64,000 nucleotides of DNA from NCBI GenBank assembly GCA_002269645.1, contig NIVC01001658.1, forward strand, positions 1 to 64,000, read 5' to 3'. Of the stretch, positions 23,602 to 44,729 are shown piece after piece. This stretch comes from Macrostomum lignano. Its lineage: Eukaryota. A model generated the notes under the pieces. It searched no databases. It saw only the letters and a program-made list of their open reading frames with translations, and was not told where the DNA came from. Within the stretch, counting starts at the first letter, position 1. Every line of letters begins with the position of its first letter. Position numbers and translations under genes: made by a program.

Positions 23602-26467
23602 ATGAACTCAAAGAGCGTCAAATCATTGAATGTTAAACGAAGCGAGAATACAAGTATGTTAGGCAAATGTAAGTTACAGTTTACATATTTAGGTTCAATT
23701 GTACGTGTGCCGTAGGTCCTTTGCTACAAATGCTTCTATAGTAAATTTTCGATCTTAAATTTGAAACAGGTAGTGATACTTTTGCAGACATTCTTCGCTG
23801 CGTTCGCAGGCAAGTACCCTTCTCTGTCTGTCAGACTGTTTTAAAAATTCTCAAAACACTTACGAGTACGTGACGCTTTGGTATTTATACTGTTTTTCAA
23901 TTTCACTGATGGAAAAAAACGAGGTAAATTATTAATTACTAAGCTTGATAATTTTCAGATTAAATTCAATTATTAAAGCATTACGAGAGCGTATCCAGGA
24001 CAGTGTGGCAGCAATAAAATTGTGGGATCATCACATAAATCCACTTGATGACAGAGTAGAATGCCACAATCTTGAGACTATGGCGAGTCTGCTGAACAAA
24101 CTTGTAAGTCAATTTGAGAACTTTGATAGTTTTAGCAACGAGGGCTTCAACACCAGGGGCTTTAGCACCAGGGGCTTTAGCACCAGGGGCTTTAGCACCA
24201 GGGGCTTTAGCACCAGTGGCTTTAGCACCAGGGGCTTTAGCACCAGGGGCTTTAGCACCAGTGGCTTTAGCACCAGTGGCTTTAGCACCAAGGGGCTTTA
24301 GCACCAGTGGCTTTAGCACCAGTGGCTTTAGCACCAGTGGCTTTAGCACCAGGGGCTTTAGCACCAGGGGCTTTAGCACCAGGGGATTTAGCACCAGGGG
24401 ATTTAGCACCAGGGGCGCCAGCACCAGGGGCGCCAGCACCAGGGGCGCCAGCACCAGGGGCGCCAGCACCAGGGGCGCCAGCACCAGGGGCGCCAGCACC
24501 AGGGGCGCTAGCACAAGGGGCGCCAGCACCAGGGGCGCTAGCACAAGGGGCGCTAGCACAAGGGGCGCAACCACAAGGGGCGCCACCACAAGGGGCGCCA
24601 CCACAAGGGGCGCCACCACAAGGGGCGCCACCACAAGGGGCGCCAGCTCCTGAGTATTAGAACTTAGCATTAGATCTGCAAAGCTGCTGTAAAAGGGCGC
24701 CAAATGAGCTGGCAAGAGGTGCCACTGTTTGCCATCCTACGGAGTGGGGGCAGCCCCTTACTTTCCTTAAGCTTCATAATTACATATATGCATAAGCGCC
24801 AGCTTCATGCACATCCTATTATTTGTCTTTTACGGCTGCCTTTCAGTGCACAGTTCAGGAAGATATTCAATGCCTGACGGTTCAACTGGCAAACGGAGTG
24901 GCTGAGGCCTTAGATTATCTGCAGAGCATACAGCATTCGGCTGACGAAGGCTGGGATGGAGAAGTCACTACGGACTGTGTACTTATTGACGAGCATCTGA
25001 ATGCAAAGGTAAGGCGCAGTGCTCACGATTCACACACTAAAATCGCTTGTCAAGACATTGAAACTGACATCGTGTGACTCCCGATCAATGCTAATTTTTC
25101 AGGTTTCACTCGCAACGGATTCACTAAAAGCTACGGGATTTCAAGATCGAACAGCTTCTAAAGAACATCGTCGAGACTCTTTCCGGCAGCGAAATCAGCT
25201 TAGGGGAATATTTTATAAGTATACCATCTTTGTTTTGGAACTTTTCTCTAAAATCTTATTAAAGAAAACAGTAATGCCAGAGAGCTTCGAACAGCTGCTA
25301 AAATTGCGGACGCGTCCGAAACGATTTATTAATCATCTGGAAGAACTCTGGAGTGAAGCGCGAACTAAGGGCCGCAGAGACAGTACAAATCTGACTCGAC
25401 TTAAGTCAACGATTGTTCAAGTTGCAAGCATCACCTTGTCCGAGAAGGAAGCAACCATGGCCGAAGTGAGTCAGCTTTGGAAACGCAGCGGCTTATTAAA
25501 GCAAGCACTGATTGATCGAGAACTTGTACTTCAAGTACTCCAAGGTACAATGGATAAAAGCGTTGACTTGTGGTCTGGAGATTCGGCAGCTGGCACTCTT
25601 ATGGACAAGAAAACACGGAGCTTTACTGAAACTGGAAAACCAACAGAGGAAGCATGTAAAATGGAGATTTTTTCAACTGCTACAGCATCAACTAAGACAA
25701 GCAGAGTTACCGTCACGAATCTCCCTGATAACCGACAGTTTTTCAGCGGTACGTCAAAGTCAAAGACGTTTTTTGTCTTGTCTAAAAGTACGCTTATGAC
25801 GTGTGCTGCGCCACGAAAAAAGAATGGTTTGAGACAGCTGTTTTCCAAGATGTTCTTATCTATTTTAGCTAATCAGTTGCGTAATGCAGTCGGTAAGATT
25901 TAAAATAAAAAGGATTTAAAGTAATAGCGACATCTGTCCAATAGACATTACCAATAGGTAATTTCCAAACATTTGTTTTAATTTCATCAAGCTATCAAAA
26001 CTCTGTTCTAATATAAATTAGCAGCAAAATTAGGTCCTTCAGAGATTGGCTTCAGCGGGAGCCCAGGTGGCCTGACTATCAGCATCTCGTCGATAGCCAG
26101 TGACCTCTCGACTGCAGTAGTCAGACAGACTATTCCCGCTATGCTAGGCGATGAAGTTGACCTGCTAACTAGAAGCTACTCAAGTGCGACAGTCAACCAC
26201 GAGCTCATTAAACGACTGTGCAACTGCTCTGAAATTGTTGACCGACTGAAACTGATTCTACTTGAGCTGGATAGCTTAATGACGGTCAGACATCATTTTG
26301 GAATCGACTCGAGTAACCAAGCTATCTCTGGTGGACAAGCCGAAACAATTCTAAGAAATTTGCGTGAAAGAGAGCTCATATCGGCAAGAGATCTCGGATC
26401 GGCCTTTAAAAAGTGCGGCTGCTTAAATGGTCTACGAATTCTGCGAGATTTTGAGACGAGTAATTAA
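23602..26467 (+). CDS. Pseudokinase - death domain protein (565 aa, 6 exons), divergent paralog of the tandem-kinase gene
   Basis: Exons 23602-23668, 23770-23869 (3' end least certain), 23959-24103, 24847-25008, 25103-25892, 26034-26467; 1698 nt, same phase pattern as the kinase paralogs. G-loop is GKCSDTFA, TVLK Lys retained, the HRD loop is replaced by WDGEVTTDCVLIDEHLNAK and DFG by VSLATDS. The C-terminal domain DLLTRSY..LIKRLCN..FKKCGCLNGLRILRDF matches ELLQRSY..LARRLCN..LKRFGCLEGLKILREF of the tandem kinase. Confidence 0.8.
24140..24650. repeat. 15 bp minisatellite (caccaggggctttag and gcgccag variants) in intron 3 of the pseudokinase gene
   Basis: Period 15; same unit as 42025-42490. 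Confidence 0.95.
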
Positions 26468-29155: not shown

Positions 29156-29574
29156 GTAAGTCATTTGTTGACTGTTAGTCCTTGGTATTTACTTATAGCA
29201 ACGTAGGTTGGAAGTTCCATCAAGAAAGTAGACTACAGTACTACAAATTCACAAAGAGCCTTAGCACCAGGAGCCTTAGCACCAGGGGCGCCGGCAACAG
29301 TCATTAGGGGCACTACAAATGAGGGCAACGTATCACAGTATACTAAACTGGCACTTAAGGGACAGAATTGGGAGAAATTGATCGGCTCCATTGTATTTGG
29401 TTTCAGCTTTACAATAGCTATATTTGTTGGGGGTTAAGTTATCGAAAAAATATAAATATTATTATCAATAACCATCCTACACATACATATCACAATTTCA
29501 CTATAACAGGTTACAGTAATACGCTTCTTTAAAAGCCTTCAACGTCTAAACTTCCGTATTAATTTCATTAAATT

Positions 29575-30150
29575 ACTCTCGCTCCCAGATCCTCACTCTC
29601 GCTCTCAGATCCTCACTCTCGCTCCCAGATCCTCACTCTCGCTCTCAGATCCTCACTCTCGCTCCCAGATCCTCACTCTCGCTCTCAGATCCTCACTCTC
29701 GCTCTCAGATCCTCACTCTCGCTCCCAGATCCTCACTATCGCTCTCAGATCCTCACTCTCGCTCTCAGATCCTCACTCTCGCTCCCAGATCCTCACTCTC
29801 GCTCCCAGATCCTCACTCTCGCTCTCAGATGCTCACTCTCGCTCCCAGATCCTCACTCTCGCTCTCAGATCCTCACTCTCGCTCCCAGATCCTCACTCTC
29901 GCTCTCAGATGCTCACTCTCGCTCCCAGATCCCCACTCTCGCTCCCAGATCCTCACTCTCGCTCTCAGATCCTCACTCTCGCTCTCAAATCCTCACTCTC
30001 GCTCTCAAATCCTCACTCTCGCTCTCAGATCCTCACTCTCGCTCTCAGATCCTCACTCTCGCTCTCAAATCCTCACTCTCGCTCTCAAATCATCACTCTC
30101 GCTCCCAGATCCTCACTCTCGCTCCCAGCTCCTCACTCTCGCTCCCAGAA
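29575..30150. repeat. 20 bp minisatellite (cctcactctcgctc(t/c)cagat)
   Basis: About 28 near-perfect copies. Confidence 0.95.
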
Positions 30151-30560: not shown

Positions 30561-31142
30561 GGAGGTGCCACCTGGGCGTCAGTGCTTGGCCTCCCAGTGT
30601 CTGACATCATGCGCACTGGTTACTGGAGGAGTGAGGCTGTGCAGCGATACCTCCCTCGGTTTCATCAGGCTGCTGCAACTTTTGCCAGTAGTGTCTCAGC
30701 CCTGTTTTAGCTCCCCATTTTCTGCTCCTATCTCCTTTGCTTGCTTTGGGTTTGGGGGCCGCTTTGTGTATCGCCTCTCGATTGATTCTCGCCAAAAATA
30801 ATATTGCTGATCACAAGGAGTTAGTATTCACTCAAGTGCATCAGGTCAACCGTTTTTTGCACACGCATTGGGTTTATAATAGTTTAGTTCGAAAAATTTC
30901 ACAAAGCCGTCTAAACAGTTAGTGATATGAAATTGTTTTGAAATAAAGTACATACTAAGTTCAGTCTAATTTATGAGTTAATAAGCACTTCTCTGAGTAT
31001 TCATAAGAGTACAGATATATTTACCATAGATCAGCTCTGATTGAGCTTGACAACAGGCACTAGTCGGCAAACTGCGCTAATTATCGGCACACAAATTAAT
31101 GTATCAGAATCAACCAATTTTGACCTTCGCTAGGATATAAGA

Positions 31143-31149
31143 TATAAAA
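31143..31149 (+). promoter_or_regulatory. TATA box (TATAAAA) of the Ly6-array gene
   Basis: Lies 40 nt upstream of ATG 31189. The upstream duplicate reads tatattaaaa at 29048-29057. Confidence 0.6.
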
Positions 31150-31188
31150 GCACGTTGCATAGTGAGAATATACTTTCTCGGCAAGGAC

Positions 31189-34100
31189 ATGAAGAGTGCG
31201 GGACTTCTTGAATCGGCTCTCGCTTGGACTTTACTGCTAACCGTAATTGGTAAGCCATTTGTTGACTGTTAAAATATTAGTCCTGGTGTTTACTTATAGC
31301 TAGTTACATGTAGTTACATGCAGAGGTCAATATAGTCGCAAACGAGCTCTAAAAAATGGGGTCCTGCGCACGGATTCAAATCTGGGGTTGTTTTGCGGGA
31401 GAGAGCGAGTAGCCTCGACCGTTAAGCAATTCTACCACTGTATGAAATATTTACCATCTAGCTTTAGACCAGAGGCACGTCTTTGCATTAGGTTCACGAT
31501 TTTTCACAGATTGTGCTGAGCAAATTCTCAAGTTAAATAAAAGCTAGAGAATTTGAGAACTTTCTAATAAAAGTTAAATAAGTTTTTGCGTTCGTGTCAA
31601 CTACTCGTATATCAACGCAGGTTGGAAGCTGCATTGCAAAAACTTAAAAGTAGACTACTAATTACATGCGATGTGGCTATGAAACAATTGATTTTCAGCC
31701 AACTATCAGCGCTTTTTGGTGTTTAATGATTGATACTTATAAAATTTTACCAGTGTATATTTAATTTTGACATTGCAGCGACTGCTGCAGGCCTGGAATG
31801 CCATGATCAAGAAAGCACAAATCACACAATAAAATGCTCGGATCATCAGAAAACTTGCGCTCGAAGCTACTTTAGCGACGGTGTAAGAATACTAACAGTG
31901 CAAAGTGTTAATTCGAATCTACGAATTTCAAAGTCAGATTTTCAAAAAAATGTTATCATCTCACTTCTAATTTTAGAAATTTATGGGTGCTTCCTGTGGC
32001 GATTGCACCAAGTTTCATTTCGCCGCGCTCTCAGTCGGATTAACGGCGTTCTGCAAAACCTGCAGCGACGACAAGTGCAACTCTGCTAAGCTAACAAACG
32101 GCTTATGTAAGCTTCGGTGCGAATCAAAAATGCAGTAGTAAGCAAGGAAGATCATATATACACAAGATGGGCCACTCATTAACCACTTATGTGGCCATAG
32201 AAGCTAATGTGAATAATTGTGCCACTCGCGACAGCACGAAAATCAACTACTGCACTCAATTTCGTCAGTAGTCTCTGCAGAGCATGCATCATTCTTAGTT
32301 TGATTGAGTATAGCTTTTTATATAATTCACGAGAATTTCTATCAAATTCTTAAAAAATAGCGTCTATGTCCCTAAGCTACAGAACTCAAATTTATAAGCA
32401 ACCAATTATTTAAAGCCTGTTTTTCCTGATCTTGTCTAATTTATAAAAATTATCTAGTACATGCACGTGTAGATAGTAATACAAGTAGCTAATAAAAAAA
32501 CAGGAGCGTCGCCAGGGGGGACAGGGGGGACATGTTCCCTCCAGTAAAAAATCTGGGGCAAATGCCAATGCTTTGTCTCCCCCTTACCCCACCTTTTGTA
32601 TGACCCGTTGTGGAAATCAATCATCTTGCTGCAAGGCGACAAAACATAGCGCCTGCGGCGCCAAAATGAGTGCCTGCGGCGCCAAAATGGTGTCTGTGGC
32701 GCCAAAATAAGTGCCTGCGGCGCCAAAATGGTTCCTGTAGCACTAAATTGAGTGCTGACAACACTGCTGATTCTGAAAATAATGTACATGCAGCAGTTTT
32801 GTAATATAATCCACCATAAAATCCAATGCGACGTCCTTTGAAAATAAGCATAAGAAAGTCAGTTGTTGCAAAAGCCTATTTTATAATAACACTTCAGCTT
32901 TCAGCCCTCAATTCTCCTGCTCGGTCGGATCCAACTTGATTGTGCTCTGCAACACTGGGGTCAGCGTGTGTTTTCGAGCTAAATACAGCAATGGAGTAAG
33001 TTACGCTAGTATTTATTGCTAGAATTATTTATTAATCATGTTTTAATAGTCGTGTGACTAAATGAGCATCTTATTTCTTTTTTGTTATAAATACAGCGTA
33101 CAATGAGCGGTTGCGGCGAGTGTGCCGGCATCATGGCTGAGGCCTTGAAAGAGAAAAAAGCAGTCGCATGCAAAACCTGTTCGACAGCTAAGTGCAATAC
33201 CGAAGTTCTATTGACTGTCGAAGGTAAGTAAATCTACATTTACTGTGCATAATCAGATTTGTTATTAGTTAATAAAGAAAGAAGCAAATTTCAATGACAA
33301 GTTACAAGTTACACAATATTAATTGGAAACGCCTTTAGTAGCAAAGGAAGTAGCAAGTAGCAAAATGACAAAATAAAGCCTTCACAAAGATAACTTCCTT
33401 AAATAGACAGCATCCCAATTACCGCAACTATCCCCCAGAATGAAAGCGTTCTCCAGATAGACAGTATCCCCCAGATAGAAAGCATGCCCTAGATACCAAG
33501 CATCCCAGATAGCAAGCATAGCAAGCATCCCTGAATAGAAAGAATTCTTAGCTAGCAAGTACCCCCCAATACAAGCATCCCCCAAATACAATACTAGCAA
33601 TTAAGCATCCCCCCAGAAAGCAAGCATAATTTAAATTGATCGAAAACTCTGTAAAAAAGATCAGGTTGCTGCGCCACAATGAAAAAACAGTATAACAAAT
33701 TAATTTTAAAAAGCTTAGGCTCAGCGCATTCTAAAACTTTCGTCAATTGTGATCGCAATCTTCAAGTCACCAGCATTTACCTTTGTCGCACTATCTGCAA
33801 CGGATTTTGTGTCGTTAGAATTCATATTTTGCGCTGTTGGCTAAAGTAAATTAAAAAGTAACAGCAAAATCATTTTGCTTGATTAGGGTTAGCATTTTAT
33901 CGGTCTTAACAGCACTCAAGCTTGACAATGACTTTATTAGCTATTTGTTTTAAATCATACACACTGATAGCCGTAGGTCTACATGGAATGTAAATGAATT
34001 CTTAGTTTTCTCACGATGCTTTGGAAACAAAATGCTGCTATAGAGGAAAACAATTTCTTATGAATATATCCACCCTATATTGATTTCGAATGTTACATAT

Positions 34101-37100
34101 GAATTGTTCCAATTGTTTGCCAGCGCCTACGCCAAAAACGGAGTGTCAACCTAGCGCCGCTGTCGACCCGAAAATCCCGGCAAAATGCGTCTACTTTCAA
34201 AATGAGCACAGCGACGAGGTAAGTGCTCTGAACAACTCGATCTACTCAAGATCAAGTTTTGTACGAGCTATATACAAAGCCATCTTTTTTTACAGAAAAC
34301 GATTATTGCTACTTGCGGAGACTGTGTCAGCTTTTCTAAGTACGCCGACAAAGCGCTAATCTCAACTACTTGCCAGTCTTGCACTGCAGATACGTGCGCT
34401 GCCGAACCATCAATGGCGAAAGTTGGTAAGTATATAGCTGTCTTTTTAATAATTAAGGCTTTTAATCAGAATATACTTATTATGAGACGCTTTTTAATAA
34501 TATTATTGAGCTTTTCGATTCTTATCCGACTAGCAGTGAATTTTCATGTCAAATACTAAAACATTCTGCTTATTGCAGAGCCAGCTGCTAAAGGCTTAAA
34601 GTGCTTCGTTAGTTTCGACCAAAAATCCAAAATCAAGACGCTAGCAATGTGCAAAGCAGGCGTGAGGCAATGTCACAGAGCCGAGTCTAAAAGCGGACGG
34701 GTAAGTCAGACAAACCTCTGTTGGAAGGCGCATGCAGTATTGTTTATTAGTGTATTATTGACAAAGAACATTCTTGTGTTTTCAGAATTTTCTACATTCG
34801 GGTTGCGGTGACTGCTCGGAAGCCAGTGAGGAAACTAAGAGTTTAGGACGCTTCGCGCGTGTTGAATGCAAATCCTGCAACACAAACGGATGCAATACGC
34901 CAAGCCTAACATTCGATAAATATGGTAATAAATATCTTCGCGGATTATTTATAATTTTTGGTAACATTTTTCGATTTTTGTCGATAGGCCGGTAATTTTA
35001 GATTTTTTCAATCAGTTTTTTCACTAAATACGCAGTGTCCCTGGACAGAGTAGTTAGTAAATACGGCCAGGCAGTACTTCTTTCAGGAGCTGATTTTGTT
35101 TGATTAAGTAGGCTACAGTACTAGCAGAAGTATGACCTGCACCTACAGCCAGGACTGCTTATTTTTAGGATGAATAATTTTCTCGAAATGAACAATTGAA
35201 TAAAACTACTGTAAAGGCGACATACTGCTGTGTACAAATACACAAAAGAATGAAAAAGCGACTTCATAGCAGAAATGCACGTAACTGTATATTAGTTTCG
35301 AAGCTTGCCGTACTTTTGTCACTTTATTTGTAATATTTTCCGTTAGAGTCATACATTTACGTACCTGTATACTAATATATTTATCTCAAACATTTTCACT
35401 TTTTGAATCACATTTACGACTACTTAACTAATTGCAAATTCTTATTTATTACAGAAGAGGCTAGAAAATGTTATGAAGGCGAAGACAAAAGTTATACGAT
35501 ATTGTGCAAATTTTCGGTATGGACATGCATGCGAAGTTACTTCAGCGACGGGGTAGGTCAAATTAATTTATTGTATACTCTCGGTATAGCTAACAGGACA
35601 GAAAGATATATAAATTCAATAGTTTATATTTGTATCTGATTTATTGCAGACATTTATGAGCGCGGGTTGCGGAAGCTGCGACAAGTTGCATGCGGAAGCC
35701 AAAGCACTTGGAAAGACGGCTATTTGCAGAACTTGCAGCACTAACGAGTGTAATTCAGCCAGTTTGATGGCAGGTGTTGGTAAGTATAGCTTCAGTTATT
35801 ATTTCCTCATTTTCTTTGATTTCTTAATTTCTTAATCCTTAGAGCGACGTCAGAAACGTTACACTCCGCCTAAAATGCGATTGCCACTTCCTAGTTAAAT
35901 CAACCTACTTCTTCCAAGTTAGCAGCTATAATCAGGTAACCCAGAAGACGGAAGAGTTAACTAGGAAGACGGAAGAATTGTTTCGTTTACGCTCTCGCAA
36001 TGATCGTCGCGGAAATTTAGGAGTCCTACTCGAATTTTTCTACTGCAGCTAGTAGCACCCAAAGATCTTTTCAGTAGTAGTGATTCAAATAGGCTATTCC
36101 GGATTTAACAATAGTGTAAGATGAAGATTTAGTATATTGTGATAATTTGTTCTGATTATAAATGGCCTCAGAAGTAGCACGAATAAACAATTAAAGTATT
36201 TTGCTTTATTTAAGTGCTGTTAATTCAAACCGGATTTTTAACTAGGACACGATCTATTTCTTATTACTAGTTTAACCTTGAATATTCACATTGGCTTCAA
36301 CTTATTTATGCGGGACTTTTTGTGCATGGGGGTTAATCCTCAGGGTGTTAATCGCAAGTCAACCCCATAGGCCAATTTTCTTGTACCCCCAAAGTATCAA
36401 CTGATGCAAAATAGTGTTTGACATTTGCATTTTTCACTTGGGGCAAATAAAACTGGGTTAGCTACCGATCATGCTCAGTGCACAATCGGGTGCTACATGT
36501 AACATGCAATTACCGTCTAAGATTTCCGTGTAAGAAGTCCTGATATTTATGCTTATTTCCTGATTAATGTAATTGAATATTAAGTGACGCAATTGTTTGG
36601 TGTCTACATTAGTTGCAGAAAACCCACCGTCAGTTTTCGTGCTGATTTACAATGAATGCCGTTTTCATTGCAGAATTCCGTGAGTTCTTTCGCTGCCACG
36701 TGGCTAATTTTGGCAGAAGATCTTTTACTTCAGTGTGCAATCATGGTGTTACTACCTGCTATGAAGCTGAACTTACTGATGGGGTGAAAATTTTGAAGCA
36801 AATTTTATTATTGACAAAATTGAAATTAATTATTTCAACTTCCAAGTCAATTTGATTTTTTCTTAAACTTGCAGGAAAGGATGGCAAATTGTGGCACCTG
36901 TGCAGAGGTTAATAAAAACAAAAAGACAGCCAAAATTTGCAAAACTTGCAACACTCCACTATGTAATGTGGGCCTTCTAAAGCCCTCTCAAGGTAAAGAA
37001 ATTATTGTTGAAGTGACTTAATTTATTAGTATTCTAGAGACAGTGGCACCTACCAAAAGACAGGGGTACCCACCAATAGACAGTGACCAAGAGACAGTGA

Positions 37101-40100
37101 CCAAAAGACTGTGACCAAGAGACAGTGACCAAGAGACAGTGACCAAGAGACAGTGACCAAGAGACAGTGACCAAGAGACAGTGACCAAGAGACAGTGACC
37201 AAGAGACAGTGACCAAGAGACAGTGACCAAGAGACAGTGACCAAGAGACAGTGACCAAGAGACAGTGACCAAAAGACTGTGACCAAGAGACAGTGACCAA
37301 GAGACAGTGACCAAGAGACAGTGACCAAGAGACAGTGACCAGAGAGACAGTGACCAAGCGACAGTGACCAAGAGACTGTGACCAAGAGACAGTGACCAGA
37401 GAGACAGTGACCAAGCGACAGTGACCAAGAGACTGTGACCAAGAGACAGTGACCAAGAGACAGTGACCAAGAGACAGTGACCAAGAGACAGTGACCAAGA
37501 GACAGTGACCAAGGGACAGTGGCGCCCACCAAGAGGCAGTGGCGCCCACCAAGAGACAGGGGTGCCCACCAAAATGCCTAATTTGTAGGCCCTTCCCTGG
37601 TAAAATGTACTGAAATTAGGCAACTCATAGCTATAGCAGCACATCAATAAACTTTAAAAGAAGATTGCATACTTTTTTATCCGATACAGACTTTGAGTGC
37701 TACGTGAGCTTCAATAATTCAGTAAACGTTGTGGAAAAATGCCCGCCGGGAGTAAAAAGCTGTTTCCGAGCCAAATCCACTGATGGGGTAAGTCGGTTTG
37801 ATAAGCATACTTGTTTTTTGATGTGTGTAATTTAAATTGTGTAACGATTGTGTAACGAATGCCCATTCCGCTAATCCCTGAACGGCCGACACGTCGCTAT
37901 AGATGATTGATTATCCATAGTCGGCTCGAAGGCCATGATAAAAGGTTGGTGGGCTACCCTAGAAGGGGCGCGGTACCCACCCGGCCGCTCCACCTGACCG
38001 GGCAGTAGGCCAAAAGAACCCTCAAGGCTGGCCCGACACCAGGAGGGGGACCACTTGCGACCGGACAACTCCCCGGCCTTCCAGCTTATCGGCACGATCA
38101 ACACCTTAGGCATTAGAGCGTACGTTGAGCAGTACCACGGCCCGCATACCCAAGTTCGGCAAAAGCCACTGGATGGTCCCCAGCGCCGGAGCCCAGTCTA
38201 TCCGGCAGCCCTAGGGTCTGCCTTGAACACTCGCGGCCCGGACGGATACCCCTGAGTCGGCTTGCGAGACAGCGTGGGGGGGGGGGGGTCTGCGGCTGCC
38301 AGCGGCAAATCTAGGGTGCAGACCTCCCACCAGCCTTTACCTGCTGAAGATAAGGGCATGGTCTGTCTCATACTTCACTGGCATGCTGAATACGCCCCTG
38401 CGAGCGAATCACTTCATAGAGAACCGTGAAAATGCATACAGGAAAAATAATATTTCCGGGTTTTTTCCTAGTAGAAATTATAATATCACGATAAAATTAG
38501 TTAAAAACGAAACTTAATTTAATTATCTCAAGCATGCGTTCCACTGAATCCATGATAAAACGACACAAAAAATTACGTATACACATGTATCTAGAACCAA
38601 ATTGTCAAACTACACCAGTATAATTTAATATCGAAACTTTCCAGTAGTGTATGCACTATTCATATCGCAGTTTCCTTGAGAGTCTACATTTATTCCTCAT
38701 ATTGTTCATGTTATAATATATTTAATGTTCTTTAAGTAATTCGACAGAAACTTTAATTGATAGTCAAATTAATTTTAAGGCGGTATTCATTGCTGCCTGT
38801 GGGAACTGCGAGCCATTCAATTCTCACATCAAAGGAGCAGCCGAGGGTGTCACTTGCAAGGCCTGCGGCACGGAACGGTGCAATTCGGCCCAACCGCCAG
38901 AAAAAGCTGGTGAGAATGTGTATTCATGTATCGTATGAATTCGAGATTGCAATTATTAGTAGAGATTTATCAGTTATTTATTTATTAGTTAGCGAATTCA
39001 ATTATTAGTTTATTTGCTGACATGAAAGCGTACGAGACAACACGCCAAGCACGTTCACACGGAGTACCCAAAAAAGGCGCGAAGACAGTTTAAATTGGCG
39101 GGGAGTTCAGTTCATTAAAACCTTGGACGACTATCAAAATAGAATTAAGAAGTTAATAGAACTTAAGGTGCAAATTTTCATATTAAACTATATTGAACCA
39201 ATAATTAAAGAACCTGCAATTTGCCTAAATACAACCAATTTTGTATAGAAAAAAATCACATAGAAACTAAAAATAAAAGCTGCTAACGACTTTGCGTTAC
39301 TTTTAAAAAAAACTGATGGATACTGCAAAGAAAATTTACACAAAAGCACATTGGGCATTCGTATCGTATGTAGTTTTATAGAAAATATTATAGATAACAC
39401 ACTTAAACCGACGCAAAGGTAGCCAATTAATTTGAAAGTGACTAAATCGGAAGATTTTATTGTGTCCAAAGATGACGTCATAATCACTAGTTAATGGATG
39501 TACGGATGTACTAGTCCGTGTTTGACCCGATCCATAGAGAGACAGTCCGATGTCTAAATTTATATTTATAATCTTTAACCTATTATATAACACAATTTAA
39601 TACGCGTCTATTTAACGTATCTTTTTATTATCAGCCACTGAAGGCATCGAGTGTAACATTAACTTTGGAACCGGCGCTAGCACGACGGTGAAATGTGGAG
39701 CAACAGTCCGGTCCTGTTTCCGAGCTGAGCTAAAGGACGGGGTAGGACTATTCGGGGTCTGAATTTTATTTAGCAGCGAGACAACTATAGACGTAATTTA
39801 TCTACAAAAATGACTCTGCAATTTCAGAAGGAATTCGCCTCTTGTGGCGATTGCAATGGGCCTACTGCTCTGTTTGGGCGTATCGGAAATTTGGTCAGGT
39901 GCGATGCCTGTTTTACTGATCGATGCGGTTCAATGCAAGGTAAGAAGTACTCTACTAGTAACAGTGTCCCCTGACTGACTCGTATATTACGGTCGTAATT
40001 TTACCAGTAAAATACCGGTATCTATCTGAGTGATTAGCGATATGGCCAATGTGTAAATATTTTAATTGTTAACTGAAAAAACGATACCAATAATGAGGTC

Positions 40101-43100
40101 GCTACACTTCAGCCGTCAAACTTGCATCGAGACTCGCGTGTTACACCTATGCCAGCAAAACTTTAAGAACGGAGATGGGATGCAGCCCCGGACAGACGAG
40201 CTGTTTCCTGGCTGAATTCAGTAGCGGGGTAATTCAAGGCCTACTAATCGCTGTTTCATTGTAGTAGATAAAGCTGTATTGATAACTTTATTAATTTCCA
40301 AGCAATTTTACCTTACAAATCTTTCCAGTCTGTCTCAGGTGGTTGCGGAGACTGCTCCCGTAGTAAGACTTTTGCTAATGGTATGAGACAGTCTGTCAAT
40401 TGCAGCACCTGTACCACAGACAAGTGCAATACGTTTTCGTCAACATCTGGAGCTGGTAAGTAGCTCGTAGTACCTAACTGCTTTTGGTATGCTATTTTAG
40501 AAAAGAGATGATAAAGTAATTAAAGATAGTTTGAGCCATAGACAACATGCACATTTTTACTGAGAGACCCGCGACTGAAAGACAACAATTTTCAAGCCTG
40601 CATACGATTGGGCATCAAAGTTGAGAGTCTATGATTGAATACCTCACGGAGCATCTTCGGTTGAATGTAGCAGTTGTTGATCTAGAAATTAGCAAAAGAA
40701 GTCACTAGTGCAGACTGATGTTTATCGAATCGTTTGAAATATATAGGAAAGGACATCCTTGTGTTCTAGAGTCCTAGAGATGTGCTAGATTAGAGTTCTC
40801 AGTGGAGTTTCTCAGTTAGAAATGTGCCTGCTAGGGTGCAACCCTTTGGTTATCTGTTTTCTTAATTAGCACAACGGAAGCAATACTCCTTCTTTAACTC
40901 TTTCTTTAAGCCGATTAACTGGCATAAAAGTCTATTAATTGCCTCCCACGTTCTTGTAACGGTCATTATCATGTACTATAAAAACACGTTTTCAGCCGCA
41001 GCTGGCCCAGCACCTGTACTGACATGCTATGCACACTCAAACACTGCCGCAAAAATCGAACAGAGCTGTCCTGGATTCAATAAGTGCTATTTGGCTATTT
41101 ACGGTAGTGGGGTGAGTCGACGCACAGATTTCAACGCGCATTGTTATTTAAACAGAAAGTCAGTTGTTCGATGTGTTTGATTTTTTTTCAGGCGGAATCG
41201 GGTAATTGCGGAGACTGCTCCCTGATCGAGTCTGCAGCTAAACTTACAGGACAAACAGTCAAATGTAGCACCTGCAGCACAGACAAGTGTAATGCGGGCT
41301 CGTCTACAGGTGCCATCGGTGCCGGCGGTGAGTGCCAATATACGATAATTTTTTAACTAGCTATGGGAATGGAGACAATTATCCTATATACGTCTAGAAC
41401 CATTTCCTAGGCGCACTTATCTCGGTTTTAAAGATTCCTTAGCATGAAAACACGCATATACCTACCGACAGACCATTTTTAGTACATGGAAGTTGGGCCT
41501 ACGAGCTAAACTTTCTTGCCTTCTCACTGCCTTTGATTTGCGGTAGTGCAGAGTGCTCACCTACAAACTAAAATATTTCCTGTGGATAAAAAAACAACAG
41601 TTTCAGGGCCTGGAAGTGCATCGGCCCTCACGTGCTACTTATTTGACTACAAAAGCAACGGACAACCCACTGAGCAGAAATGTTTTACAGGTCGAGAGTG
41701 TATGACGGTTTTCCATGATAAAAAAGTAAGTCAGCCTAAGTCTTCAAGGAATGAATAAAGATACTTCAAGTTAATTTTCGTTTGATTCTTTGCTATTATA
41801 GGCCATGTCGGGTGCTTGCGGAGACTGCTCGATTATCAATAGTGCAGTCAAGAAGATGGCGGTAAATTCGATAACATGCACAACCTGCAGCAAAGACAAG
41901 TGCAACTCAGGCTGGTCGAATAGCGGAGCTGGTGGTGAGCTTATCAGACGTTCGGGTGACATGTTCAACCTTTTTTTCAAGAATAGTTGGTAAAAACAAA
42001 CAATACGTGCATGAATTGCAGGATGCACCAGGGGCTTTAGCACTAGGGGCCTTAGCACCAGGGGCTTTAGCACCAGGGGCTTTAGCACCAGGGGCTTTAG
42101 CACCAGGGGCTTTAGCACCAGGGGCTTTAGCACCAGGGGCGCCAGCACCAGGGGCTTTAGCACCAGGGGCTTTAGCACCAGGGGCTTTAGCACCAGGGGC
42201 TTTAGCACCAGGGGCTTTAGCACCAGGGGCTTTAGCACCAGGGGCTTTAGCACCAGGGGCTTTAGCACCAGGGGCTTTAGCACCAGGGGCGCCAGCACCA
42301 GGGGCTTTAGCACCAGGGGCTTTAGCACCAGGGGCTTTAGCACCAGGGGCTTTAGCACCAGGGGCTTTAGCACCAGGGGCTTTAGCACCAGGGGCTTTAG
42401 CACCAGGGGCTTTAGCACCAGGGGCTTTAGCACCAGGGGCTTTAGCACCAGGGGCTTTAGCACCAGGGGCTTTAGCACCAAGGGCACCAGCAGCAACAGT
42501 CGTTAGCAGCGACAAAGCTACAAAAGGAGGGCAACGTATTCCTTTAGCAAATTCATTGCTCTCACCTCGCGATTCAGCCCCTTCGCTTTAGGTTTTTGAG
42601 CACTAAATATTGCTTAGTGTTAATTCGATGCGTATTTACATTTTAGTGTCTGCATCGGCTCCAGGATTCAAGTGCTACGTGTTTAACAACGGCAGTGGGA
42701 AAATGACTGTTAAATGCAGTTCGCCTCTAAGCTGCCTGCTTTCCAAATATAATAATGGGAACGGTAATGTAAGTCACAAATGTCCTGTCGGAGTATTGTG
42801 ATTTCTACAAGTAAAAAATCAACTTCAACTCCCTTTAAGCTTGTGCTTGATAGTTGGATGGAAGTTTTCGTATGATTCCATCATTGAGGGCCATTCCCCA
42901 AATGCACAGAGGGTACGTCACAGCCTGACGATTAGAAAGCCAGGGCCGCTGTACACCTGTGTGAGCGTGTCTATGAGTGTCTCATTTATTAGCAACATGA
43001 ATGTCTTTGCAGATTTTTGAAGGCAGATGTGGAGACTGCGCCGCGATAAACGCCATGGGCAAGATAACAGGAGTGAAAGTCGAGTGTCACAGCTGCAAAA

Positions 43101-43249
43101 CTGACCTGTGCAACTCTGTTGAAGAATTCAAGAGAATCAGCAGTGCCAAGTCTGATGAGCAAAGCAGCGCTTCCTCGGTACAATACGGCAATATTGAAGC
43201 CATTGGCATAAATGTATTTTTGACTGTAGCTGTATTTGCTTATGCTTGA
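31189..43249 (+). CDS. Secreted/GPI-anchored protein with 12 tandem Cys-rich Ly6/uPAR three-finger-like modules (1006 aa, 25 exons)
   Basis: Signal exon 31189-31249, then A/B exon pairs: 31779-31882/31977-32106; 32898-32995/33097-33223; 34124-34218/34296-34425; 34579-34700/34786-34924; 35455-35552/35650-35779; 36674-36783/36875-36992; 37690-37787/38780-38909; 39635-39741/39828-39939; 40113-40228/40329-40455; 40996-41111/41192-41327; 41601-41725/41802-41934; 42647-42768/43013-43249. Each A exon is phase 1-0 with usually 3 Cys. Each B exon is phase 0-1 with CGxC..CxxC...C(N). Total 3021 nt, ending in a Ser-rich spacer and a hydrophobic tail ([15 protein letters not shown]). Confidence 0.85.
32640..32735. 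repeat. Short 21 bp tandem repeat (gcctgcggcgccaaaatgagt)
   Basis: About 4 copies in a Ly6-gene intron. Confidence 0.75.
37075..37560. repeat. 14 bp minisatellite (cagtgaccaagaga)
   Basis: Period 14, intronic between modules 6 and 7. Confidence 0.95.
37860..38345. other. GC-rich insertion of unknown class in the module-7 intron (probable mobile-element fragment)
   Basis: Abrupt GC rise inside an AT-rich intron, which makes this A-B intron ~1 kb versus ~80-250 nt in the other modules. No diagnostic motif or TSD found. Confidence 0.35.
42025..42490. repeat. 15 bp minisatellite (caccaggggctttag)
   Basis: About 30 copies; same unit as 24140-24650. Confidence 0.95.
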
Positions 43250-44729
43250 ATTAGTTTAAAGCATCAAGACTAAAAATGTGCTTGGCTCTAAAAAAGATAA
43301 AATGCAAATTTAAATTGTTTTTTAACAGTCTACCAATATATATGCTATGCTGCTCCCTATGTTGCACTAAAAAGGTAGAGATTAACATAACTTCTTTAAG
43401 CCACATCTTTTGCACATTACGAGTATTCACACATACCTGTACTACATGGACGTAATGTACGATATAAACCGTTACATAACACCACCCACATAACAAAGTA
43501 TATTTTTTCGTAAAAAATGTTAAATGCAAGGTTTTCGAGACTGAACAACAGTTACCGCTGTATGTACTTTAGTAAATCTATTGCAACCAGTTCGTATACA
43601 TATAAATGTTCTGCTTTTGTAACTTTTGTACGAAACAGTTTGTTTAAATTGCTAATAAATATCTGCAAGCTTGCTATCTACGTACATGGTATGGTTACAT
43701 GGTAATAGATGCGACAGTATATGCACACAAGGCATACTTTTCCTACACCTTGCATGTATGCTCGTATGCATGCCTATGATCTTAACTTTATCAATTTGAT
43801 GCTTAATGTTCGTACAACTGGACATAATAAATTGGACGAAGTTCTGTTATACGGTAACTACGGCTCATATATTGTAAATGTTCTATGCGCGATATCCTAC
43901 AACTCTCAAAGTGCTTGAACGTAAGAAACATTCTGTTCTATTATTTATGTTTGTCAATTAATTTTGTCATTTAAAATTTTAAAGTGAACGCTTTATACAC
44001 TTTCTGATACATTGACACACTTTTATTTGCAAAATAGGTTTTCTGTCAACATGTCCAAATTAAAAAACATGTACAAAATTGTACAAACATGTACCCCATA
44101 CCATGCACTATATACGGTAATTATAGACTGTCGAAGTGTTAATGTTAGCTTCCACTTGCATGTACGGCTATATGTTTGCAAACTGCAGATAAACATGAAT
44201 AAAAAAGCATCAAATACGCCTTCATGCTTTAATATAGCTGATATACTTAGTTGCACAGTCAAAATGGATGCGCTTGCTTAGTGTCATTTTAAATTCATGC
44301 AATAAGCTAAAAATAATAAATGCTCAGTAGTATAGGCGATCGTACACCATGAATTTGCTCGCAAAGGTACATAGATATTATTTCATGCTAACGATATTAA
44401 AGTAATTTGCAGATTTGGAGCAGATTCGGAGCATTAATTACGAGTATATATCCGTGAATTTTTTTCTGCAAAGAAAATAACAAAAAATACATGGTTGTGA
44501 GGAACTTCGACAATAAATGTTCTAGATAGAATATCCCTTTAAAGTACAACTAATTTTAGTTGCTAGTAAATTATTGACTAGCTTCTTTGATTTAAATTTA
44601 TTTAAAAATGATTTATTTGTTTGCATGAACTTTTTACGGCAATTTAAAGATAAATTGGTATATGCATTTCTGATAGTAATTACCTACCTTACAGTAAATG
44701 ACTACGGCCAAGCTGTTTGCGGCTTCACT

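Follow-up and report, generated by a model that had tools for sequence, protein, structure and literature searches.

The Ly6/uPAR (LU) domain is a unit of about 60–90 residues with the three-finger fold, which has five β-strands and three loops that extend from a disulfide core; its four or more conserved disulfides (8 Cys) follow a stereotyped order, and an Asn comes after the last Cys. Genes of the superfamily follow a common plan: the signal peptide has an exon to itself, each domain is encoded by a pair of exons with phase-1 introns on both flanks, the intron within the pair falls at the loop 2 tip, and the GPI signal is in the last exon (PMC6600238, PMC8417595). The proteins uPAR/PLAUR (3 LU domains), C4.4A/LYPD3, Haldisin/LYPD5, CD177 and the zebrafish two-LU proteins are all encoded in this way, with 2–4 domains in each, and uPAR-del4/5, which lacks domain II, is a known case in which exon skipping removes a whole domain in frame. 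Long tandem arrays of Cys-rich, three-finger-like domains in secreted proteins are found in insects, where Drosophila proteins with 2–44 LU domains have been reported (PMC6600238) and DUF753 proteins, among them those of the Hermetia peritrophic matrix, carry 2–5 copies. Short-chain snake toxins (cobrotoxin, erabutoxin) and CD59 are single-domain proteins, and LU membership is accepted for eight-Cys variants, among them the short toxins of snakes and some of the LU domains in Drosophila (PMC6600238). In flatworms, the schistosome proteins SmLy6 and SmCD59.1-7 are surface three-finger proteins of GPI type, for which complement inhibition was tested but not found (PMC3812095). Two further systems matter here for their splicing. 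Dscam has mutually exclusive, individually interchangeable exons, which are picked singly through pairing of conserved intronic docking and selector RNA, and isoforms are observed in large numbers. In schistosome micro-exon genes, symmetric exons of 6–36 nt make up most of the coding sequence.

We analysed a 64 kb stretch of contig NIVC01001658.1 from Macrostomum lignano, a free-living flatworm (hereafter the window), in which a single gene of 25 exons occupies positions 31189–43249 of the + strand. The gene was rebuilt from the raw sequence, has GT-AG at every intron, and comprises a signal-peptide exon followed by twelve A/B exon pairs, each pair encoding one module. Its open reading frame runs to 1004 codons; if the annotated acceptor at 41601 is used, it has 1006 and the rebuilt model is 100% identical to GenBank PAA65389.1, and the coordinates match the CDS of GenBank gene BOX15_Mlig019351g1 on the same contig. 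The features are as follows.

31189–31249, + strand: exon 1 of 61 nt, which holds the start codon, encodes the signal peptide and closes in phase 1; PAA65389.1 has the same N-terminus.
31779–32106, + strand: module 1 (A1 31779–31882, B1 31977–32106); phases 1 to 0 and 0 to 1, inner intron 94 nt; from fold prediction and Cys alignment.
32898–33223, + strand: module 2 (A2 32898–32995, B2 33097–33223); inner intron 101 nt; from exon model and module alignment.
34124–34425, + strand: module 3 (A3 34124–34218, B3 34296–34425); inner intron 77 nt, only 2 Cys in A3, ends CA instead of CN.
34579–34924, + strand: module 4 (A4 34579–34700, B4 34786–34924); inner intron 85 nt; three older UniProt models link the A4 donor (34700) to B7.
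35455–35779, + strand: module 5 (A5 35455–35552, B5 35650–35779); inner intron 97 nt, closest relative module 1 at 48% identity.
36674–36992, + strand: module 6 (A6 36674–36783, B6 36875–36992); inner intron 91 nt.
37690–38909, + strand: module 7 (A7 37690–37787, B7 38780–38909); inner intron 992 nt, the sole long one.
39635–39939, + strand: module 8 (A8 39635–39741, B8 39828–39939); inner intron 86 nt, ends CG instead of CN.
40113–40455, + strand: module 9 (A9 40113–40228, B9 40329–40455); inner intron 100 nt.
40996–41327, + strand: module 10 (A10 40996–41111, B10 41192–41327); inner intron 80 nt.
41601–41934, + strand: module 11 (A11 41601–41725, B11 41802–41934); inner intron 76 nt.
42647–43249, + strand: module 12 (A12 42647–42768, B12 43013–43249, stop codon TGA 43247–43249); from exon model.

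Exon 1 ends in phase 1, every A exon (12/12) runs from phase 1 to phase 0 and every B exon (12/12) from phase 0 to phase 1, which bears out the twelve modules and the phase pattern read by a first-pass annotation of this DNA. No A or B exon is symmetric alone, so skipping one exon shifts the frame; the internal exons measure 95–139 nt, none of them a multiple of 3, and the end exons 61 nt (first) and 237 nt (last). The long inner intron of module 7 includes a GC-rich block of ~620 nt and reaches 6958 nt in one paralogue (L001), and A11 has a tandem acceptor at 41607, 6 nt downstream of 41601 and likewise in frame. Rfam and tRNA scans of the 64 kb window returned no matches.

Structure prediction identifies each module as an LU three-finger domain. 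The AlphaFold2 model of module 1, computed with the 12 modules as alignment, has a pLDDT of 90.7 and five strands, and all 50 of the Foldseek PDB matches shown are three-finger proteins (probability 0.75–1.0, TM up to 0.74), including the BMPR-IA ectodomain, uPAR (match 2), CD59, Prod1 and snake toxins. Over its whole length, module 1 can be aligned with cobrotoxin b and with short neurotoxins, 8 of 8 Cys being in register, and the toxins and CD59 share with the modules the eight-Cys skeleton with 'CG.C' and a terminal 'C....CN'; such matches show that fold and ancestry are common, but not that the function is shared. The first-pass annotation had called the modules Ly6-like and had left nematode ET-module or insect DUF753-like folds as alternatives, and the model and the fold search point to the three-finger fold; the Pfam ET family gave no match at E ≤ 10.

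A whole-protein Pfam scan gave no LU-family match at E ≤ 10, its sole entry, SET_assoc (E 0.25), being unrelated and far below its cut-off. Single modules matched DUF753 (7/12), cobra-type toxin (3/12), CD59 (2/12, best E 3.5e-4) and also Toxin_TOLIP, all below threshold; the best DUF753 match (E 0.007) covers positions 13–79 of the 79-position profile with 17.5 bits against a gathering score of 24.7. DUF753 is thus the Pfam family matched by most modules, and UniProt calls the fragment A0A1I8GG40 'DUF753 domain-containing', but the insect proteins belong to a different phylum and the matches fall short of the Pfam gathering score. An exhaustive profile search yielded only 7 proteins at E ≤ 0.001, and, one metagenome protein excepted, no sequence orthologue outside M. 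lignano was detectable in the profile search, which did not retrieve the schistosome SmLy6/SmCD59 proteins either. Two of the 7, P0005 (sturgeon assembly) and P0006 (mussel), are unrelated low-complexity repeats. A word-indexed search with a 17-domain alignment produced no scored match, and one with the full-length protein found its own protein cluster only. Within M. lignano, the name 'UPAR/Ly6 domain-containing protein' is given to a single-domain relative that shares the Cys skeleton of the modules.

The pattern CxxC..CxxC..C has exactly 12 matches in the six frames of the 64 kb window, all of them within B exons. In the module alignment (72–89 residues per module as aligned) C7, C19, C41, G42, C44, C60, C63 and C68 are invariant and C26 nearly so; module 3 has 7 Cys and the whole protein 95. 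The Cys skeleton described in the first-pass annotation is therefore kept overall, with two departures from it, the A exon of module 3 having 2 Cys and the terminal CN being present in 10 of the 12 modules (exceptions module 3, CA, and module 8, CG). The eight Cys of a domain would form four disulfides in a stereotyped order, 1–3, 2–4, 5–6 and 7–8. The full plesiotypic 10-Cys pattern with Cys 8 and 9 adjacent ('CC....CN'), which the schistosome proteins keep, is absent from the modules; all twelve have the arrangement CxxC....CN, the last residue differing in the two modules just named, and the loop-1 Cys pair is missing. In comparison with the uPAR group, the modules have the same fold, but have 8 Cys, lack the loop-1 (2–3) disulfide rather than the 7–8 disulfide, and carry CxxC in place of adjacent CC.

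The ends of the protein suggest export to the cell surface. Exon 1 encodes a hydrophobic stretch (10-mer score 2.34), and the C-terminus of module 12 consists of the domain, then a Ser-rich spacer (SSASS) and then a 16-residue hydrophobic end with no cytoplasmic tail. The tail has a hydrophobicity score of 2.35, and its sequence, judged by eye and by that score, fits a GPI-type signal, in which small omega residues and a short polar spacer precede the hydrophobic end; spacer and hydrophobic end together look like such a signal, and the product is a secreted and probably lipid-anchored protein. A stop codon with a hydrophobic 16-residue end directly before it occurs in exon 25 only, in agreement with the earlier reading that the GPI-type tail is limited to the last B exon.

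Compared with published descriptions, the exon layout of the array shows every element of the LU gene plan, with a putative GPI signal in the last exon. The A/B boundary lies at residues 34 and 35 of module 1, between strands C and D (26–31 and 36–41) of the AlphaFold model, a position that corresponds to the loop 2 tip. The regular phases are the ordinary LU gene layout repeated twelve times and not a special splicing system. The first-pass annotation had taken the phase pattern as a pointer to splicing diversity, whereas it is generic LU gene structure and is expected from tandem duplication; phase symmetry inherited in that way carries no information on alternative splicing. Its remark that twelve domains are unusual is likewise weakened: the number is high against the uPAR group, but is precedented by the 2–44 LU domains in Drosophila and the 2–5 copies in DUF753 proteins. 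The module duplications are old: modules share 25–48% pairwise identity, DNA-level similarity survives only among B9, B10 and B11 (70–78%) and introns share none. Similarity matrices of A and B parts were not significantly correlated (Mantel test, rho 0.11, p 0.28). The module pairs 1/5 and 9/10 agree in both A and B halves.

We consider it likely that this is a constitutively spliced gene for a protein of twelve LU domains, which arose by tandem duplication and carries a predicted GPI-type signal and a surface role. A canonical two-exon LU unit, already flanked by phase-1 introns and split by an intron at the loop 2 tip, would have been duplicated in tandem repeatedly to give the array, each copy inheriting the A (1 to 0) and B (0 to 1) phases, and the regularity would then be a historical by-product and not a splicing adaptation. 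All 25 exons would normally be joined to encode a signal peptide, twelve LU domains connected by linkers of 12–21 residues, each domain held by four disulfides, and a GPI-attachment-type signal. The product may be an extended, multivalent LU protein that is tethered to the cell membrane on its outer face, or released from there, and serves to bind ligands or to organise complexes at the cell surface or at junctions; we infer this surface-binding role as for other LU proteins. In the literature on expression or function we found no paper naming Mlig019351 and nothing useful for Macrostomum lignano together with Ly6, and neither Mlig019351 nor Mlig015647 occurs in the supplementary files of five papers on M. 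lignano.

The alternative that survives best, although we regard it as unlikely, is combinatorial splicing, in which regulated skipping of modules, or joining of an A exon to the B exon of a downstream module, would create a repertoire of hybrid three-finger surface proteins. By the exon phases, skipped-module joins and joins of any A to a downstream B are all in frame, exactly as the first-pass annotation had stated, and its figure of 78 possible A–B domains is correct as arithmetic, but is not an observation. One of the four disulfides (b–d) would cross the A/B boundary, so hybrid domains are conceivable, and uPAR-del4/5 provides a precedent for skipping a whole LU domain. Older UniProt models from three paralogous loci (A0A1I8GG40, A0A1I8GNK6 and A0A1I8JC15) all contain an exact exon-to-exon junction from A4 to B7, one of the three also joins B8 to A10, and the older model P0013 can be rebuilt exactly from exons of the window at legitimate GT-AG sites. 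However, an ab initio predictor is expected to yield such models wherever any A-to-B join is in frame, and the older models look like artefacts because part of B10 is read out of frame: a cryptic acceptor in B10 gives a 50-nt piece (41278–41327) that is out of frame in P0004 and P0013. They also contain orphan B exons that lack their A counterpart, and the base accuracy of the ML2 assembly is poor. The A4-to-B7 junction thus looks like a prediction artefact, though it could be a real transcript.

The transcript models favour constitutive joining. The GenBank annotation of the assembly was built from RNA-seq (StringTie/TACO and a de novo transcriptome) followed by TransDecoder, which means that reads support each adjacent junction; the pipeline dropped isoforms below 75% of the major one. 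The paralogous loci, on contigs NIVC01001658.1, NIVC01003518.1 and NIVC01000345.1, diverge by 1–2%. At all three of them the annotated model is complete, with 25 exons, from which we infer that constitutive splicing is the main mode. In the paralogues L001 and L002, 25/25 exons and 24/24 GT-AG pairs are intact and collinear, so that all twelve modules are retained, and the 16 synonymous and 16 non-synonymous differences between this locus and L001 (pN/pS 0.28) show purifying selection, measured against this one paralogue. The signals in the introns point the same way. Donors in the 25-exon model are mostly GTAAG or GTGAG and acceptors are all standard, and the introns between A and B exons are short in 10 of 12 modules (76–101 nt), which may favour joining of each A exon to its own B exon. 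A search for intronic selector/docking motifs found no exact 10-mer or reverse complement in more than 3 of the 24 introns, a result close to shuffled controls, and no inverted repeats of at least 40 nt. The layout had been likened to Dscam and to micro-exon genes, but the only likeness is that some exon omissions keep the frame; the exons here are 95–139 nt long and singly asymmetric, and neither a Dscam-like recurrent motif nor a long inverted repeat was found. It is somewhat less likely again that the A4-to-B7 and B8-to-A10 junctions are real, in which case module skipping and hybrid domains would produce a variable GPI-anchored repertoire from a gene present as three near-identical paralogues. 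If this were true, the Ly6/uPAR superfamily would have a new way of diversifying, by exon-level recombination inside a disulfide-rich domain, and M. lignano would be a tractable system in which to study it, as transgenesis is established there.

It is highly improbable that the array is a set of small, separate Ly6-type genes with first exons of their own, wrongly chained into one model. LU genes do often lie in tandem clusters (PMC6600238), and relatives of one or two domains that share the Cys skeleton exist in M. lignano, yet no inter-module intron contains an ATG-initiated hydrophobic exon with a phase-1 donor, and no B exon but the last contains a stop codon or GPI tail, all others ending open in phase 1. 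The RNA-seq-derived models span all 25 exons at three loci and the modules lie merely 153–900 nt apart. The single-gene reading of the first-pass annotation, which had weighed it against several genes with unseen first exons, is upheld.

Equally hard to credit is that the repeats are not LU domains but another CxxC-rich kind (Giardia VSP or 'high cysteine membrane protein', zinc ribbon or nematode ET module), as the automatic UniProt names 'Variant-specific surface protein' and 'High cysteine membrane protein' and profile matches to eS27 zinc-ribbon proteins (E ~0.004, through the CxxC...CxxC half) would have it, since Pfam VSP and ET give no match even at E ≤ 10, the hydrophobic end has no cytoplasmic tail of the conserved kind that in a VSP follows a CxxC-rich ectodomain and a transmembrane anchor, the zinc-ribbon matches are confined to the B half (profile positions 33–71) while toxin matches run end to end, a protein with a signal peptide should have its Cys oxidised, the fold matches shown are three-finger proteins only, and the exon layout is that of LU genes.

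The twelve-domain LU reading corrects the label of a gene that was already annotated (BOX15_Mlig019351g1): public databases list it as 'hypothetical protein', 'variant-specific surface protein' or 'high cysteine membrane protein', whereas it encodes a 12-domain Ly6/uPAR three-finger protein. It also carries a caution for genome scans, as phase-symmetric sets of repeated exons are what tandem duplication of modules is expected to leave behind; these sets also let gene predictors make in-frame 'skipped' models, and are therefore no evidence of programmed splicing diversity. For the superfamily, the array extends long LU arrays, earlier reported for insects, to a free-living flatworm, and indicates that the ancestral LU exon plan, with its phase-1 flanks and loop 2 tip intron, is conserved in Platyhelminthes.

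The gene model was obtained by translating the forward strand of positions 31100-43400 and linking the open segments through GT-AG sites, which rebuilt from raw sequence a single uninterrupted reading frame of 25 exons at 31189-43249 (+); with the acceptor at 41601 it matches the deposited 1006-aa protein (PAA65389.1) exactly. Its parts are as follows:

exon 1, 61 nt, + strand: signal peptide, phase 1 at its end
A exons (twelve), 95-125 nt, + strand: each phase 1 to 0
B exons (twelve), 112-139 nt, + strand: each phase 0 to 1
exon 25, 237 nt, + strand: the sole exon with a stop codon

The first-pass annotation had described twelve phase-regular A/B pairs and a GPI-type tail confined to the terminal exon; the rebuilt model reproduces both, and that description of the locus is confirmed as accurate, small corrections aside. 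The window covers the start of contig NIVC01001658.1, and the feature coordinates are those of the annotated CDS. For this GenBank assembly the annotation was derived from RNA-seq (StringTie and TACO, with a de novo transcriptome and TransDecoder) and not ab initio (PMC5730564), so every adjacent junction has read support.

A putative TATAAAAG box lies at 31143-31150, 39 nt 5' of the ATG; unless the transcript is SL trans-spliced, its 5' UTR would have to be very short. A candidate AATAAA is found at 43654-43659, ~400 nt 3' of the stop. In-frame tandem acceptors at A11 (41601/41607; the GenBank model takes 41601, adding Val-Ser relative to 41607) and A12 (42647/42665; an older model takes 42665, giving six residues fewer than 42647) are candidate minor alternative acceptors. 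Read-through of the B3, B4 and B5 donors (34426-34557, 34925-34993, 35780-35833) gives 18-44 strongly hydrophobic codons and then a stop; intron retention here could in principle yield truncated proteins with membrane-anchor-like ends, though a mere effect of T-rich introns is more likely.

A regular expression for the B-exon Cys motif, run in six frames over the 64-kb window, matched exactly twelve times, always within the B exons of this gene, and no three-finger motif was found elsewhere in the window, which places the gene outside any local cluster of LU (Ly6/uPAR three-finger domain) genes. The flanking annotated genes, at ~23602-25903 (+) and from ~44646 (+), encode 404-aa and 1249-aa proteins with an empty Pfam record. 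Across the twelve-module alignment C7, C19, C41, G42, C44, C60, C63 and C68 are invariant and C26 nearly so; the conserved Cys skeleton claimed earlier holds in general, except that module 3 is short of one Cys and that modules 3 and 8 end in CA and CG, respectively, instead of CN. A3 (34124-34218) lacks its third Cys in all three paralogs, and the resulting odd total of 95 Cys in the protein may leave a free thiol or allow an inter-domain or intermolecular disulfide. The modules share 25-48% identity, similarity survives at the DNA level in B9-B11 only, and the introns share nothing; the duplications are old.

Pfam found no LU-family domain in a scan of the whole protein, and single modules gave sub-threshold matches only (DUF753 in 7 of 12, cobra-type toxin in three, CD59 in two, Toxin_TOLIP in one). 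Zinc-ribbon (eS27) profile matches were rejected, as they covered the B half only and reflect a CxxC coincidence. AlphaFold2, run on module 1 and supplied with all twelve modules as its alignment, gave a confident five-stranded model (pLDDT 90.7). All 50 of the 50 Foldseek PDB matches listed are three-finger proteins (probability 0.75-1.0, mostly >0.9; TM <=0.74), among them the BMP receptor IA ectodomain, uPAR, muscarinic toxin, Prod1, cardiotoxins, bungarotoxin and CD59. The phmmer alignment of module 1 to cobrotoxin b and short neurotoxins runs from end to end and keeps all eight Cys in register, with CG.C differing by one additional residue, C..C by two, and no other difference. The predicted fold, the matches listed and the toxin register support the assignment of the module, earlier called Ly6-like, as a Ly6/uPAR-type three-finger domain. 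The disulfides are predicted to be a-c and b-d (core), e-f (loop 3) and g-h (C-terminal knot), in which case one, b-d, would cross the A/B exon boundary.

This boundary falls between residues 34 and 35 of module 1, in the turn that separates strands 26-31 and 36-41 of the AlphaFold2 model, at the tip of loop 2. LU genes typically comprise one signal-sequence exon and then two domain exons, 'generally flanked by phase-1 introns', with the GPI signal in the last exon (PMC6600238), and the same plan is described for PLAUR (PMC8417595). The flatworm gene is this textbook plan repeated twelve times. Since tandem duplication of an LU unit must copy its phases, the regularity requires no selective explanation and is uninformative on splicing; the phase symmetry that had been taken as a pointer to splicing diversity is ordinary LU architecture.

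Programmed combinatorial splicing of the modules is improbable; besides the inherited phases, the following points speak against it or are neutral. The RNA-seq-derived models at three loci are all full length; the annotation pipeline kept no isoform that fell short of 75% of the major one, and rarer forms would therefore not show in these models. Donors are mostly GTAAG or GTGAG and acceptors all standard, and 10 of the 12 intra-module introns are short (76-101 nt) against 153-900 nt between modules, a spacing that would favour joining each A to the B of the same module. No 10-mer, reverse complements included, is shared by more than 3 of the 24 introns, and these hold no inverted repeats of at least 40 nt, hence nothing resembling the docking and selector sequences of Dscam; the exons are not micro-exons and, taken singly, are not symmetric, omission of a single A or B exon not being frame-neutral, and the proposed Dscam- or micro-exon-gene-like layout is not supported. 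No internal signal-peptide exon exists, as separate genes with their own first exons would have, in agreement with the earlier one-gene reading.

The sole public hint of non-adjacent junctions comes from three older UniProt models, A0A1I8GG40 (282 aa), A0A1I8GNK6 (489 aa) and A0A1I8JC15 (579 aa), which we take to come from ML2, an earlier assembly, by way of WormBase ParaSite. By allele signature each belongs to a different paralog, all three join A4 straight to B7, and one joins B8 to A10. Linking 15 window exons at legitimate GT-AG sites gives A0A1I8JC15 exactly, with these non-standard joins:

34700 to 38780, + strand: A4 to B7
39939 to 41278-41327 to 41802, + strand: path through a 50-nt piece of B10
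41934 to 42665, + strand: entry 18 nt inside A12

However, two of the models regain frame through that B10 piece read out of frame, and in them B11 or B12 has no A exon to pair with; as all A-to-B joins are in frame, predictor behaviour would account for both features. Base accuracy of the ML2 assembly is also far lower (31.9% vs. 64% error-free bases). The non-adjacent junctions are thus probably artefacts, with A4 to B7 the one concrete lead. Given uPAR-del4/5, a natural in-frame loss of the complete domain II, occasional module skipping would be unsurprising, whereas programmed diversification would surprise.

The 90%-identity cluster of PAA65389.1 also takes in PAA51013.1 and PAA85130.1 from two further loci, which fits the known recent genome duplication of M. 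lignano. At these paralogous loci (L001 and L002) 25/25 exons are collinear and 24/24 GT-AG pairs retained; exon indels are absent from L001 and limited in L002 to the last two exons (3 and 6 gap positions), and the window differs from L001 by 16 synonymous and 16 non-synonymous changes (pN/pS 0.28). Intron lengths vary among paralogs through insertions and minisatellites, large arrays of which (14-mer x32, 15-mer x31, 20-mer x29) lie in introns 13 and 23 and 5' of the gene, with a related 15-mer at 29256-29286. Paralog intron lengths vary at these sites:

37072-37521: minisatellite
42025-42485: minisatellite
29575-30149: minisatellite
32651-32755: minisatellite

The sole long intra-module intron, A7|B7, holds a GC-rich block of ~620 nt with a poly-G run (37840-38460), retained at 94-98% identity in the three paralogs (L001 17773-18028 and 23565-24182, split or duplicated about a ~5.5-kb insertion; L002 16766-17385); it gave no match in Rfam and tRNA scans and may be an old mobile-element remnant.

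Most LU proteins have a single domain and the mammalian maximum is three or four; Drosophila proteins carry 2 to 44 (PMC6600238), and insect peritrophic-matrix proteins 2-5 DUF753 copies. Twelve, earlier called unusual, is a large number above the mammalian range and, as far as we found, undescribed in flatworms, yet the protein is not of a new kind. When 1.84 billion representative proteins were scanned exhaustively in HMMER with the profile of the module, seven in all came back at E<=0.001. Genuine M. lignano matches were the window gene, a fragment model, a single-domain protein of 140 aa named 'UPAR/Ly6 domain-containing protein', and a secreted protein with two domains; the only relative found elsewhere, P0007 (JGI metagenome, 187 aa, 1560-nt contig), presumably from another small invertebrate, also has two domains, shares the CG.C...C..C....CN skeleton and carries a signal peptide and a C-terminus that is hydrophobic. 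This flavour of the domain thus appears lineage-restricted at the sequence level. UniProt's automatic names for different models of the family are 'Variant-specific surface protein', 'High cysteine membrane protein' and 'DUF753 domain-containing protein'; the first two are unsupported by any family model tested, a Pfam VSP match being absent even at E<=10. The gene is already annotated, yet effectively uncharacterised and misnamed.

The M. lignano literature searched yielded no expression data for this gene. The exon-1 signal peptide would direct the protein into the secretory pathway, where twelve independent disulfide-locked three-finger domains would fold, spaced by linkers of 12-21 residues (the last three Ser/Gly/Ala-rich); the protein has only four N-glycosylation sequons. 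The C-terminal end, in which SSASS and a short polar spacer precede 16 hydrophobic residues that run up to the stop, has the classic layout of a GPI-attachment signal, and this predicted signal would tether the protein to the membrane. LU proteins elsewhere serve as receptors and co-receptors, fly septate-junction organisers and schistosome tegument proteins, and by analogy with these we propose that the gene may encode a long cell-surface protein, multivalent and tethered to the membrane, with a binding or organising role.
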